64,000 bases of DNA from Salisapilia sapeloensis CBS 127946 (Eukaryota; Protista; Oomycota), in the NCBI GenBank assembly GCA_023334545.1, contig JAADVB010000058.1:1-64000 (forward strand). The letters run 5' to 3'. Positions within the stretch are counted from its first letter, which is position 1. Every line of letters begins with the position of its first letter. The notes beneath the pieces were generated by a model that had not been told where the DNA came from, searched no databases, and worked only from the letters and a program-made list of their open reading frames with translations. Position numbers and translations under genes: made by a program. This document shows, piece after piece, positions 57,061 through 64,000 of this stretch.

Positions 57061-59487
57061 CTAGTCTTTCAAATCATCTTCAAACGTATCCTCCACTTGC
57101 ACATCCACATCCTCCGGATCCGCTGTGGCGGCACCTTCAATCACAAGCACACTCCCGTGCTTGGTATACTTTGGTGACTGCTCCATACTCTTCACTCGCG
57201 TCAACGCCTTGAGTTGAGGACTTAACGGTGGTTTTTCTTCCTCTTCCTCTTCCTCCTCCTCCTCTTCCGCTGTATTGGTAAACTTTAGTGCGCCCATGAG
57301 ACTCAACGCCTTGATCTTCTTTCGAGCTCGCTTCCACTTGGCATGTGCCGTCAGCTTGGCATTCAAGCGGAATCCTTCCATGAACTCATTAATGTCAATC
57401 TTATTATCTCGACCAAAGTCCATCATCTTCATCAGCGTCGCAGGAGACGGAAGCTCTTGCTGCGCTTCGCTCGGAAGCTTTTCGTTCAGCATCTTGACAG
57501 CCATCTCCAAGTCTTCTAACGTCACCGTTCCATCGCCATCATGATCTAGCATACGGAACAAGGCTTCCAATCGACTGCGATGGCGGTAGAGACTATTAAA
57601 CGCACGTCGACGTTGCATGTGCTCTTCTTCCGACAACGCTGGATCACGTTGTCCCTGGGCGTTGTATCGGTTCAAAAACTCTGCGTAGGAGACTTTGCCC
57701 TCGTCATCCAAGACGGTCAAGAGCGGCTGCAACGCTCGCCAGTCTAACGAAAGGTCCAAGGATGCTTCGAGTATGTCACACCACTGCTGCAACGTGACTT
57801 TACCAGTGAGTTCTGTATCACACTTGACAAACTCTTCTTCCAAGTCATCTCTTGTCTCAAGAATGAGTGAGAAGAGTCCGTCAAGATTCGACACAGCCAT
57901 GTCACGAGCTTCGACACTTGCCATATACTGGAAGAAAGCAGGTTTACTAGACTTGTCGGACGGAATACGCATGAAACAACCGAGGTTGTTCGCTTTGCCG
58001 CAATAGTTGGAAGCTGAGAAGAGAGTGACGAGCATACCCTTGTCTCCGTATGGCCAGTGGAAACCTTTTGGGACACACTCGTGCGAACGAACGATTAGTG
58101 CGAGCTTGTTTTTATGCATAAACTTATGCACGAGGTCTGGACCGTACGTGATCCCTGCACCACGTGCGTTCTCTGTCCAGCCTCGAGCACGCTGTGGGTC
58201 GCTCCATAGCAAATCCCGCATGAGGTTCATTCGACGCCACGCTTCTTTATGGTCTCTCTTGCTTATCTTGGAGCGGTAGCGGGATAGGTCGTACTCTGTC
58301 CGGTCCATTTGATTAAGTTCGTGTAGATCGATGCAGTCGCGACCGATGCCTCCATGCAGCACAAGAACTCGTTGGTCCAAGAGCGTCGCGAGCGGCAGCC
58401 ATTGGAATGACTGGCAGAAGAGCTCGTACACTTCGATATCGTACTTGGTCTCGCACTCTTTCATAAAGCCAAAGACTTGTGTAATGGAGAAATCTTCGTG
58501 ATTGCCACGATTGATGAGCACGTGATCGGGATACAAGAGCTTAAAGAGGTAGACGATGACCATGAGTTCAACGCCACGGTCTCCTCGGTCGACAATATCG
58601 CCATTAAAGAGGTACGGGTTGCTCTCGGACGGAAGTCCGTTTTCCCGGAAGATGAGAAGGAGGTCGTCTAGCTGGCCATGGAGGTCTCCGATGACTGTGA
58701 TGTGATTTGCCTCGATCTTGTACTCGACCAGCGTCGAGATCTTGGACAGGATCGGCGTGATTTCCCTCAAGACACGGACGACGACGTGACGTGGGATCTT
58801 GCGACCTTGACGACAGGACTCGATTAAGTCCTCTGCATTCTGAAGTGTAATCTGCGCGTCTAGATCGGACGTTTGGTGGTACATATCCGAGATATCAATC
58901 TGTCCAACGAGACTTTGGGACGTCGGATCATTCGCGTCTGAATCCGAGTCTGAACCGGAATTATCACTTGCTGAAGCCTGCGCTTTCTTCTTCTCATGCA
59001 CTTCAGGCATATGGGCCGAAAGCGTATCGAGAAAGACGGATAATTCCAACTAGTACATGTCAATGTCTTGTACTCGGAATACAATCACAAAGATATCATA
59101 CCACTTCAGATTCTTCCCTGTTTTCTAGATCGTTAAACAACTTCCAATTTGAGATCACATCTTCCCCAGATTGTTTCTTCGTGGGTGCTACAAGTGGAGC
59201 CAATCAATATGATTCGCTTTGGCAGGTACGACAAGGATGTATAGGAAAGCGACGTACTTGATGGTTCTTGAGATGAAGGTGATGGAGGGATAGATGAAGA
59301 GTGTGAATGCTCTAGTTCAGATTCTTCACCTTGACTTTCAGCCGTTGACTTTTCACGCCTAAAGACGCAGAAAGTGAATAAAATAAGCAGGACGAAGGAT
59401 ACGACTATAAAAACAAAGGAACAACTTTTGCAACGATCTCTTCTGCTTTGACTCTCGCTGTTGTTCGTGGGAAGACTTGTTCCCCAT
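57061..59487 (-). CDS. PPEF: PPEF/RdgC-type PPP phosphatase with EF-hands (multi-exon 5' end)
   Basis: GDLHGQ, GDIVDRG, NRGNHE, SASNY; C-terminal EF-hands DHDGDGTVTLED and DFGRDNKIDINEF; upstream exons give MGNKSS and WKLFNDLENREES. The first splice donor is uncertain. Confidence 0.88.
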
Positions 59488-60235
59488 GGCCGCTTAAGCG
59501 CTATGACCCGAGGTGAAGCAAATACTGATGTGGCGAATAACAGGATGGCATTCTAGATTTCGATTTATTACCTTCTATTTATCGTCACATTTATATGTTT
59601 TATAATATTGGTTTTGAAGGACAGATTAGATATGTACCACATACCTTTGTGTGGGAATGGATACACTTTTACTACAGAATGCCCCCGAATGGAGTCAGAT
59701 GCAGGTGAGATGTAGTAACCTGGAGAGTATCGTCTGTAGATGCTTTCTTCAAGCGGCAAGTGGCTTAAAAGGGCCGATATTCAACTAGATATTGTGTCTG
59801 TGCGTTGTTCTTGATATCGGTATGGTTGTCATGAGTTAGAGTGTTCATGATGGAAGGATCGCTGCGAGTCCCACGGTGAAATACCGTCGAGTCCCATTGA
59901 CTACAGTCGATGGAATGAAGCATCCAGGGCGATTAGGTAGGCGTGGTATTCCACCTGGACTATCATTTGCTTGAAGCTTATAATCTTTCAAAATTTCCCC
60001 AGGCTGCCATAACACAATGGTATCCCTTCTGGAAGGACACTATCAGCCGTGGAAACCCCCACTCTCTTCCTACTAGCCCCCTCTCTTAATTCCTCTTCAC
60101 TACTCTATATCCCTTCTTTCCTTAGCGATACAAATGTAGGATCGTAGATTAAAGTAACCAAGAAACACAGGAATTAAACTAAAGAAAAACCATTTTCATT
60201 CAAATGAAACCCAACGTCCGCATGCTTCCTCGAGC

Positions 60236-63200
60236 TTAATCTCCCATGCTCTGGAAGGCCTGTTCAATCTCTTCATTCAAGTTGGCAAAGAACTGACGTA
60301 GCTCTTGTTCCGGTTGCTTCGGTAGTTGGAACTTGGTCTGAATAATCTTCTGCAGCACGGGATTCATCTCGTTCCGAATCTGTGCCCACGTGATCTTAGC
60401 ATCCGCTGGTGAATCCGCAATCGCCTTTTGACTCAAGTCATAGAAAAGCACAATCGACCGGAGCATACCGACACTTTTGACAAGTGGACAAGTGTAGTCA
60501 TAATCCGAGAAAGCATTCTGTTGCAAAAAGTCTTCTCGCAAGACTTTTGCAACTTCCATAATGACTTTCTGATCTTCACTAAGACTTTCCTTTCCGACCA
60601 ATTGGACAATCTCGGTCAGATTATCTTCCTTCTGAAGAATATCTTGACACTTTGTACGTAGCGAAGAGTATTCGCTATCGATCTCATTAAAGAAAGGTTC
60701 CAAGACACCCATGTACTTGGTGTAGCTCATGAGCCAATTCACACTTGGGAAGTGCTTGCGCTGTGCTAGTTTCTTGTCTAGTCCCCAGAAGACTTGGACA
60801 ATGCCAAGCGTCGCAGCAGTCACAGGATCTGAGAAGTCTCCACCAGGAGGACTCACGGCGCCCACGACCGTCACACTACCTTCACGATTCGGACTGCCGA
60901 GACAAGACACACGGCCAGCACGCTCGTAGAAAGCTGCGAGACGTGCGCTGAGGTACGCAGGGTACCCAGAGTCGGCTGGCATCTCTCCCAATCGACCAGA
61001 CATCTCACGCAAAGCTTCTGCCCATCGAGAAGTCGAGTCAGCCATCATCGACACGTTCATACCTTGATCACGGAAGTACTCGGCGAGCGTGATGCCAGTG
61101 TAGATACTCGCTTCACGTGCCGCCACAGGCATGTTACTCGTATTCGCGACAAGCGCCGTACGTTTCATGATCGGCACTTCTTTACCATCAACAGACATGG
61201 TGAGTTCCGGGAAGTCATTCAGGACTTCGGCCATCTCGTTCCCGCGTTCACCACAGTTGTGGACAAGTGCCATGTTCGCGAGGAGGAACTGATGGTCACT
61301 GTCGTTAGAGAGCGTGAGGCCGAAGAAGTCGTCCGCAGGCTTCTGGACGAGAGAGAAGCGGTACGACTGAGGGAGACGGTCGCAAGGAACAGGAGACATG
61401 TAGTGCGACTTGGAGTGCGAGAGGACGGAACGAAGAAGGTTGGCATCGTTCGAGGTTTTCGCACCGAGAGATAGTCCGTCGGAGGTCACCTGGCAGACGA
61501 GACCGAGAGAACGAGAGAGCTGGAGAAGGCTCTGGACGAAGGAATCCTTACGAGGACGGATAAGAGCACTGACACTCGACTCGTCCACCACTCCAGCAAC
61601 GTCAATGAAGGCAGCCAGGATGTTCTCACGAACGCACATGTCGTCCAAAGACAAGGAAGACGGGATGCTATCCTTCATCTTCATCGCCTGCATCACCTCC
61701 TCTAGATGCACTGGCATGATGTCAGTGGCAAGAGAGTGACCGAGGTCGTACGCGACATCCTCTAGCTTTTCCTGTACGGACAAGCCCTTGAGGACAGAAG
61801 ACAGACGAGAGCTCTCATAGAGCACAGGAGACAGGAGTTGCTTCGTCTCCCGACGCACGTGGGCGTGAACAAGTGATAGATCACGTGCTTCCAACGTCCA
61901 TTCCAAGTGCTCAGGCAAGGACGCGACAAACGTCGACGCTTCAGATGTAGTAGCAAAGGTCTTGGTCGTCGGATGGACTAGACCGATGACACGGCCATCC
62001 GACGTGATCGTCTGCATCTGCTGCAAGTACGACACGTGCGTAGTTTCTTGCTCCGCGACTTGGCGAGTACGTAGGACGAGGATGTGCGTGGCATTACACG
62101 TATACAGGACACTATCTCCTTGCAAGTCATGGATCAAAACGTCATACATGGTCTCCACGCCTCTCGGTAGAGCCGTTACGAGTCGTCCATGACCGTCTTT
62201 GCCCATGACCGACTCTCCTTCCACCACATCCTCCACGTTTCTTTCATCTCCGTTACTCATGAGCACCTTGGTGCCTCTCGCAAAGCACCCTACGTACACG
62301 ATCGCATCCGAGTTACTATGCTTACTCAGCGCTTGGGAAATGACCGTCTTGCCACATCCAAAAGCGCCTGGTACAGCACAGGTACCTCCCAGGACGGAAG
62401 GGAAGAGCGCGTCGATGACACGTTGACCAGTCTGCAGTGCGACGTTGCCCGCTAGCTTCTCCGTGACCGGACGAGGCTTTCGCACGGGCCACAAGTGCGA
62501 CAGACCGAGCTTGTGGGTGGCGCCAGTGGTGTCGTCTCGGACTTCGAGGACCGTGTCCTGCAGGTTGAAGGTCTCATGTCCGTCCGTTCCGTCGCCATAG
62601 ACCTTGACGACCGTGCCGTAGATGTTCGGTGGACACATGATCTTGTGCGAGTGGATGATGTCGTTCTCGTGAACAAAGCCAAACACATCTCCGCCCGAGA
62701 TCGGGTCGCCCTCCTTGAAGTTCTGAGGTCGGAAGCGCCATTGTTTGTCGGCTGCGAGGGCCGGGACGTCGACGCCACGAGGGACGTAGACGTCCTTGGA
62801 CAGCTCCGCGATGGATTCCAACGGACGCTGGATGCCGTCGAAAATGTTGTCGACGATACCAGGACCTAGTTCCACCGAAAGAGGAGACTTTCGACGTTCG
62901 ACAGGATCTCCGACGGTTAGTCCAGCTGCACGAGGAGAAGATTTGCATCGTTTAGAAGTGTTGATCGGTTAGTAGGAAGATATGGAAAGTAAATCATTAG
63001 AAAGGAACGTACAGGTGTCTTCGTAGACTTGGATAGACGCGTTGGTACCTTCCAGCCGAATGATTTCACCCACGAGCTTGTCGTGTCCGACACGCACCAG
63101 CTCGTACATGGCCGCTCCATGCATATTCTCCGCAATTACCACTACACATATATGTAAATATATATATCTCTACATCTATCTCCTATCATTCATAAAACGC

Positions 63201-63274
63201 GTACGAGGTCCGGAGACTTTAAAGACGTATCCATAATCCGCCTCCTTCTCATTCTCTCCGAGTACATGCGCCAT
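60236..63274 (-). CDS. VMA1: V-type H+-ATPase catalytic subunit A precursor containing an intein (exons 63274-63205, 63141-63013, 62925-60236)
   Basis: [23 protein letters not shown]; P-loop GAFGCGKT; [47 protein letters not shown]. Confidence 0.97.
61256..62287 (-). mobile_element. VMA1 (VDE/PI-SceI-like) intein, 344 aa, degenerate LAGLIDADG homing endonuclease
   Basis: In-frame insert between VYVG and CGERGNEM; starts [10 protein letters not shown], contains block B TCNATH, ends [26 protein letters not shown] followed by Cys+1. Confidence 0.96.
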
Positions 63275-63497
63275 CTTCCGCTCGATCTTTTGTTCCTCCG
63301 TGTGACTTGAAGAAAGTATTAAAAGGTATATAATTGGATAAAATACATGATAATAATACCCAATGAAATAAGTGTATTTTATTGGTTCTCGACACAAACA
63401 CATTTGAGCATCTCAAGACCGACAAGGAACGGACTTGGGCGACTTGTACTTGTCTTTAACAGTAGATACGTACATTCGCATTGGATCAGGATCAAAT

Positions 63498-64000
63498 ATG
63501 GAGACGCCTGGAGATGTGTCCAAAACGACAGGCTCTGCTGCAACGTCTGTGACAAGTAAGAAGGCTGTGAATCTTATCATTGATTCCGGCGCGATTATTA
63601 AAGGCGCTGATCTCGCTTCTCTAGCAGAGGTATATACTTGTATGTGTTGCAGGATCTAGTTCTCCTTACTGACTACCGTGTGTGTGTCTTCTAGACGTTC
63701 TGGACTGTACCGGATGTGATTAGTGAGATTCGAGATGAACGCTCGAGACGCATGTTCCGTCGACTACCGTTCGAAGTGAAGACGAGAGAGCCATCGGCTG
63801 CTGCCATGAACGCCGTCGTAGATTTCTCCAAGAAAACCGGCGACTACGCTTTCCTCTCTCTTCCTGACTTACGTGTCTTGGCACTCACATACATGATCGA
63901 GACGGAAGCCAATGGCACTTCCCACTTGCGAACAGAACCATCCAGAGCGAACGATACGAGTAAAGTGGCGTGCAAGTTCTACAACGGTCCCAAGGGCTGT
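63498..64000 (+). CDS. NOB1: NOB1 PIN-domain 20S pre-rRNA endonuclease (5' partial; intron 63630-63694)
   Basis: LIIDSGAII|..TVPDVISEIRD..REPS..FSKKTGDYAFLSLPDLRVLAL. Confidence 0.88.

Follow-up and report, generated by a model that had tools for sequence, protein, structure and literature searches.

The gene for the catalytic subunit A of the V-ATPase in the window (the whole stretch of DNA analysed here, 64,000 nucleotides) is interrupted in frame by a genuine class-1 intein of the VMA1-a family, allelic to PI-SceI. It represents a new host lineage, an oomycete, for a known family, and not a new kind of element. To judge from the residues that it retains, the intein is almost certainly splicing-competent; to judge from its alignment and predicted model, its homing endonuclease is inactive. 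Horizontal exchange with the intein pool of fungi is the best-supported origin and probably the true one, with the direction of the exchange unproven.

The Interrupted V-ATPase Gene

The gene occupies 60236-63274 on the reverse strand and has three exons, as defined by open reading frames and RNA contigs. Exon 1, with the ATG start (63205-63274), and exon 2 (63013-63141) are placed by the RNA contigs and the spliced coding sequence; they flank intron 1 (63142-63204, 63 nt), whose neighboring pieces are contiguous in the RNA contig of run X6. Intron 2 (62926-63012, 87 nt, GT..AG) is defined by the joint in RNA contigs X1 and X6. An AT-rich simple repeat (TATATA/ATCTAT) fills positions 63143-63182 of intron 1. 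Exon 3 (60236-62925; open reading frame and RNA contigs) holds most of the gene: an 879-aa open reading frame at 60236..62875 (-) is V-ATPase subunit A, split in frame by 344 codons. The N-extein part of this exon (62288-62925; open reading frame and Pfam) has the Walker A motif GAFGCGKT and ends in AIVYVG; the C-extein (60236-61255) runs from Cys+1 (CGERGNEM) to the stop codon and is 86-89% identical to oomycete V-ATPase A.

Between them lies the intein (61256-62287, Cys1 to Asn344), delimited by Pfam, the match to PI-SceI, the alignment and the structural model; with the arrow marking the boundary, its junctions read AIVYVG↓C at the start and MALVHN↓CGERGNEM at the end. An earlier sequence-only reading had described a 1032-nt in-frame insertion at this very place, with Cys1, TCNATH, the terminal His-Asn and Cys+1 intact, and this description stands in full. 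Three parts can be told apart on the reverse strand: (i) the N-terminal Hint half with a PI-SceI-type DNA-recognition region (aa 1-165; 61793-62287), which aligns to PI-SceI 1-190; (ii) a degenerate LAGLIDADG endonuclease remnant (aa 166-305; 61373-61792), recognized by alignment and by the secondary structure of the model; and (iii) the C-terminal Hint half (aa 306-344; 61256-61372), in which block F and block G, ALVHN, are marked by invariant columns. The spliced coding sequence specifies a 961-aa precursor and, once the intein is removed, a 617-aa mature subunit. Third-position G+C is 0.64 in the intein, 0.68 in the N-extein and 0.54 in the C-extein (the whole window has a G+C content of ~45%); because the intein falls between its exteins, composition gives no sign of a recent arrival. 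A tblastn search of the window with the intein returned no second copy.

Adjoining the intein gene, a single-exon 662-aa open reading frame (57061-59049, reverse strand) encodes a Ser/Thr phosphatase with C-terminal EF-hands (PPEF type), a Ser/Asp-rich N-terminus and an acidic Glu run; its look-alikes are found in animals, haptophytes and oomycetes. A divergent gene starts at 63509-64000 on the forward strand, has a short intron at ~63631-63695 and continues past the end of the window; by eye, it seems to encode a ribosome-maturation nuclease of the Nob1 type with a PIN domain.

Intein Family and Fold

What identifies the insert as a PI-SceI relative? Hom_end_hint (PF05203) matches it over the complete profile (1-228/228, E=4.9e-62), the Pfam Hom_end nuclease profile matches in part (E=2e-8), and the best solved relative in a phmmer search of the PDB is PI-SceI (E=3.2e-45), in two stretches of residues 1-163 and 206-344. 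Taken with the insertion site, the Pfam and PI-SceI values put the insert far past chance similarity. Its residues were compared in an alignment of 20 VMA1-a inteins. Cys1, the TCNATH motif with His68, His343-Asn344 and Cys+1 are all present, block B reading N65-A-T-H68; invariant across the 20 are C1, H68 (block B), W130, H332, F334, L336, N338, V342, H343 and N344. All 20 members also share the junction, which falls between Gly and Cys in (V/I)Y(V/I)G↓CGERGNEM, in agreement with the earlier proposal that this is the insertion site of the Saccharomyces VMA1 intein (PI-SceI/VDE). That proposal had also named motif similarity to PI-SceI beyond generic intein motifs; these motifs are present and align as claimed. 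An AlphaFold2 model built from the 20-intein alignment (pLDDT 94.1, pTM 0.88) superposes on eleven PI-SceI crystal chains with TMq 0.81-0.87 and E ~1e-32 (Foldseek).

The comparison with PI-SceI (VDE, the S. cerevisiae VMA1-a intein; PDB 1VDE, 1LWS, 1DFA) shows both how much is shared and how far the two have drifted apart. The insertion site and the class-1 splicing residues are common to both, as are, in the predicted model, the Hint fold with its inserted DNA-recognition region and the second LAGLIDADG half-domain. However, PI-SceI has 454 aa and the window intein 344 aa, the first nuclease half-domain being deleted in the latter; overall identity is only 30-33%; and the hosts are a yeast and an oomycete.

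Expression, Assembly Integrity and Splicing

Sequencing runs from two organisms (A and B) were compared with positions 60100-63400 of the window, four runs being used. From organism A, RNA run X1 yields a 2767-nt contig (word depth 654) that follows 60251-62925 and then 63013-63104 with zero differences; because it skips 62926-63012, the 87-nt intron has been removed and the intein sequence kept in the RNA. Run X3, another sample from that RNA study, gives a 2424-nt contig of like content. Both contigs cross both intein junctions at 100% identity, and RNA word depth over the gene is 574-654. DNA run X5, from a study other than that of X1 and X3, provides a 29.9-kb contig that spans the whole of this region and may itself be the source of the window. 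From organism B, RNA run X6 gives a 2905-nt contig that covers the entire gene, has both introns spliced out and retains the intein; over the 2707 nt of its exon-3 piece, intein included, it differs from the window by 102 substitutions and 0 indels (~3.6% divergence). The organism B samples come from six separate single-sample studies and may, as a guess, be environmental metatranscriptomes and not a cultured relative. None of the RNA and DNA contigs examined skips the intein. The insert is not a spliceosomal intron, since RNA contigs keep it while the introns are spliced out.

These contigs also bear on the least welcome explanation, an artefact in which a fungal intein was fused to an oomycete gene through fungal contamination or chimeric assembly. 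No support for it was found beyond the prior that the VMA1-a family is fungal, and we give it almost no chance: single RNA contigs from two samples of another study and a DNA contig cross both junctions with zero differences, the gene is arranged alike in the ~3.6%-diverged relative, both flanking exteins are oomycete, and in protein searches the intein matches no fungal sequence above ~40%. As far as contigs can show, the junction-spanning RNA and DNA contigs rule out chimeric assembly, and the sequence-only reading, which had argued against simple yeast contamination, is borne out by independent RNA and DNA contigs and by the oomycete position of the exteins. Might the gene instead be a pseudogene, or the insert remain in the mature protein? 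Splicing is deduced here from sequence and not from protein, which speaks for such a reading; yet it is highly improbable, because the splicing residues are all intact and invariant in the alignment, synonymous changes dominate in the exteins (counts below), 2.7 kb contain zero indels, RNA word depth is high, and the insert splits the conserved subunit core.

Selection was gauged from 40 listed differences, out of the 102 between A and B, all lying between 60299 and 61604. Among these 40, synonymous changes outnumber nonsynonymous ones by 25 to 1 in the exteins and by 10 to 4 in the intein; the four nonsynonymous changes of the intein all fall at residues 236-300, in the nuclease remnant, and none in the C-terminal Hint blocks. 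The pattern, small as the numbers are, agrees with a splicing domain kept by purifying selection and a nuclease on which selection is relaxed. Splicing competence is argued from several features together: intact residues, a maintained reading frame, purifying selection, an essential host gene, and a site in the conserved core of the subunit. Because the insert divides this core at VYVG↓CGERGNEM, the unspliced precursor would be expected to be inactive.

Decay of the Homing Endonuclease

While the splicing blocks are complete, the nuclease is a remnant. From LAGLIDADG block C to just before block E, ~170 alignment columns have no counterpart in the window intein; in the model, the first half-domain consists of two helices only and its beta-saddle is gone. 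The second half-domain is retained, with LAAFIDVAG as its motif. Residues D218, D326 and K301 of PI-SceI, which we take to be catalytic, correspond to T188, A231 and D206, respectively. An active homing endonuclease would be expected to combine two LAGLIDADG half-domains, both supplying a catalytic acidic residue, and the intein does not; the nuclease is considered dead because its first half-domain is deleted and all three PI-SceI residues are replaced. Within the homing cycle as described (PMC1654191), a splicing element that has lost its nuclease would stand at a late stage.

Fungal degenerate or mini VMA1-a inteins offer the closest parallel to this state. P0001 (365 aa, chytrid-like host) and P0011 (389 aa, ascomycete-like host) occupy the same late position in the homing cycle, with splicing blocks intact and the nuclease shortened as in the window intein; their hosts are fungi, unlike that of the window. 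Their grouping with the window intein is weak and is lost without the nuclease columns.

Host Lineage and Distribution of VMA1-a Inteins

The exteins mark the host as an oomycete. Identity of the C-extein is 86-89% with V-ATPase A of Globisporangium polare, Pythium insidiosum and Thraustotheca clavata and 75-80% with ochrophyte homologs. An extein tree of 66 taxa puts the gene of the window in the oomycete clade (SH-aLRT 97) within stramenopiles (100), with the fungi in a clade of their own (100); the gene had earlier been ascribed to an oomycete-like organism, and the tree bears this out. On the strength of this position and of the short GT-AG introns (63 and 87 nt) seen in RNA, the host gene is an oomycete nuclear gene and not a fungal one.

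How common are such inteins near this host? The 12 other sequences of the oomycete clade in the extein tree do not have one, and in two of the sequences (P0023, P0028), inspected directly, the insertion site is uninterrupted. All other oomycete VMA1 sequences recovered, and the ochrophyte ones apart from Chrysoreinhardia, likewise are without an intein. A search of a 5.8-billion-protein collection with the intein found no other oomycete copies, the closest relatives being ~34-40% identical. An exhaustive phmmer search of 1.84 billion representatives gave only 3 matches below 1e-30, all of them VMA1 fragments or proteins with an intein; P0160, one of the three, was placed in the tree and has a fungal extein.

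Elsewhere, the family proved broader than expected. The sequence-only reading knew it only from budding yeasts, a restriction that does not hold: VMA1 inteins are listed from four fungal subphyla, Pezizomycotina, Saccharomycotina, Taphrinomycotina and Pucciniomycotina (Green et al. 2018, PMC5784728), to which the present searches add Kickxellales, chytrid-like fungi and a pelagophyte. The Kickxellales, absent from the list of the 2018 survey, carry them widely (Coemansia, Martensiomyces and Dipsacomyces; P0311-P0358), and two fungi with chytrid-like exteins (P0001, P0410) have them as well. The pelagophyte is Chrysoreinhardia sp. (Pelagophyceae, MMETSP1164), whose P0067 holds a 428-aa VMA1 intein at residues 280-707, at the same site and ending IVHN↓C; the tree places its extein firmly with pelagophytes, and the literature searched makes no mention of the intein. 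This is the only other stramenopile VMA1 intein found. It shares the insertion site with the window intein but is only 25-32% identical to it, sits on a very long branch and ends SHHKFQLANQLIVHN.

Two reported cases lie further off. The two VMA inteins of Anaeramoeba ignava (PMC10710043) belong to a promiscuous, virus-linked cluster and use two VMA sites; they are set apart here by their description. The RNA-polymerase intein of Phytophthora ramorum (PMC1635734) is associated with an oomycete but lies in a viral relic, its gene being a degenerate viral one and not one of the host, and it does not resemble PI-SceI. No other oomycete-associated inteins were found in the literature searched (intein together with oomycete genera).

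Origin of the Intein

If the host gene is oomycete, where did the intein come from? Phylogenies built separately for the two answer with unequal clarity: the exteins are firmly oomycete, and the intein tree is a polytomy that does not single out a donor. In that tree, the window intein lies within the radiation of fungal VMA1-a inteins, on an unresolved backbone, and pairs with the chytrid-like P0001 (lgn1) at weak support (90/61). As a specific fungal donor or sister, P0001 was rejected: the pairing vanishes, leaving a polytomy, once the nuclease columns are dropped. Two topologies are not rejected by approximately unbiased (AU) tests: one in which all fungal inteins form a clade without the oomycete intein (p=0.213), and one that unites the oomycete and pelagophyte inteins (p=0.145). 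Given these tests and the polytomy, nesting inside fungi, the donor and the direction of transfer are not established.

Pairwise identities are more telling. Over the Hint and DNA-recognition columns, in which values near 40% may approach saturation for Hint, the window intein is 39-46% identical to every fungal VMA1-a lineage, fungal lineages are 34-52% identical among themselves, and the window and Chrysoreinhardia inteins are 32% identical. With no lineage favored, the affinity to budding-yeast VDE that had been proposed in particular falls away. The exteins show the reverse pattern, with 56-63% identity to fungi and 73% to Chrysoreinhardia. Within fungi, two Coemansia species have exteins that are 91% identical and inteins that are 42% identical, one of the two Coemansia intein lineages groups with Pezizomycotina inteins, and the Saccharomycotina intein P0160 pairs with a chytrid-like intein (support 99-100). 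This conflict between intein and host trees points to horizontal movement of VMA1-a inteins among fungi, and fungus-to-oomycete gene transfer is well documented (PMC4447370). Of the cross-kingdom transfer suggested earlier, what survives is its core, an intein family common to more than one kingdom, and that transfer is the most parsimonious account, given the patchy occurrence of the intein and the opposite trends of intein and extein similarity; nesting in fungi and direction do not follow from the present tree.

An old element could also have been inherited. A VMA1-a intein present in an early stramenopile or an earlier eukaryote would survive here and in Chrysoreinhardia after many losses; the identical site in the pelagophyte, the AU test that leaves the clade of the two standing, and a nuclease long dead, which implies an old element, all favor it. 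Nonetheless, identity is lowest between the two stramenopile inteins (32%, against 39-46% between window and fungal inteins) while it is highest between their exteins (73% against 56-63%), and very many independent precise losses would be needed, given that the other oomycete and ochrophyte VMA1 sequences recovered are without an intein; we regard vertical inheritance as unlikely. Nor need the source have been foreign: another PI-SceI-like intein or a free HO-like nuclease of the same genome might have been retargeted to VMA1, reaching the fungal site independently. That non-allelic PI-SceI-like inteins, one in Prp8 and one in an RBR ligase, nest among VMA1 inteins in the tree lends this some plausibility, but insertion at one and the same peptide bond in the window, fungi and the pelagophyte is predicted by allelic homing and not by convergence, and the likeness to fungal VMA1-a inteins extends through the DNA-recognition region. 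Such an intragenomic origin seems quite improbable.

The explanation that we consider likely as a whole is of an expressed class-1 VMA1-a intein, self-excising and with a dead nuclease, that entered horizontally from a pool shared with fungi. The intein would have passed from the VMA1-a pool circulating among fungi into the oomycete lineage, homing, with its nuclease then active, into a near-universal target site that is nearly invariant across eukaryotes. This entry would be old enough for the nuclease to have decayed and for base composition to match that of the host gene. Today, a PI-SceI-type intein appears fixed in a putatively single, expressed V-ATPase A gene of the lineage. It is transcribed inside the mRNA, from which two spliceosomal introns are removed, a step that RNA supports; after translation, it would excise itself through an N-S acyl shift at Cys1, attack of Cys+1 on the thioester, and cyclization of Asn344 aided by His343, with ligation of the exteins into the 617-aa subunit. 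With its nuclease inactive, the element would be unable to home, and would stay only because its removal would need a precise deletion.

Implications

The finding extends VMA1-a, the founding intein family, to another eukaryotic supergroup; the literature searched reports the family almost only from fungi. Fungi and oomycetes have habitats in common, and an expressed VMA1-a intein apparently under purifying selection in an oomycete host gene makes a concrete case for intein movement between them. It would also illustrate how the homing cycle ends in nature, with splicing retained and the nuclease lost. If the essential V-ATPase subunit is matured by splicing, as predicted, this step would be a lineage-specific vulnerability; a similar vulnerability has been argued for fungal Prp8 inteins.

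Could fungi have a counterpart in this oomycete lineage as a hub of PI-SceI-type inteins, the VMA1 copy being one member of a resident family? This is doubtful; if true, it would imply repeated fungus-oomycete intein exchange and possibly domestication of a nuclease parallel to the yeast HO/WHO elements.

Two of the sequences collected are proteins other than V-ATPase A. P0162, a 2943-aa Ala-rich Prp8 fragment from an apparently high-GC organism, apparently contains four inteins, one of them PI-SceI-like with a WELEAR DNA-recognition motif. P0167 (972 aa, from an AT-rich organism) is an RBR/Ariadne-type E3 ligase split by a full-length PI-SceI-like intein; since this intein nests among VMA1-a inteins, the PI-SceI-type family appears to change host genes.
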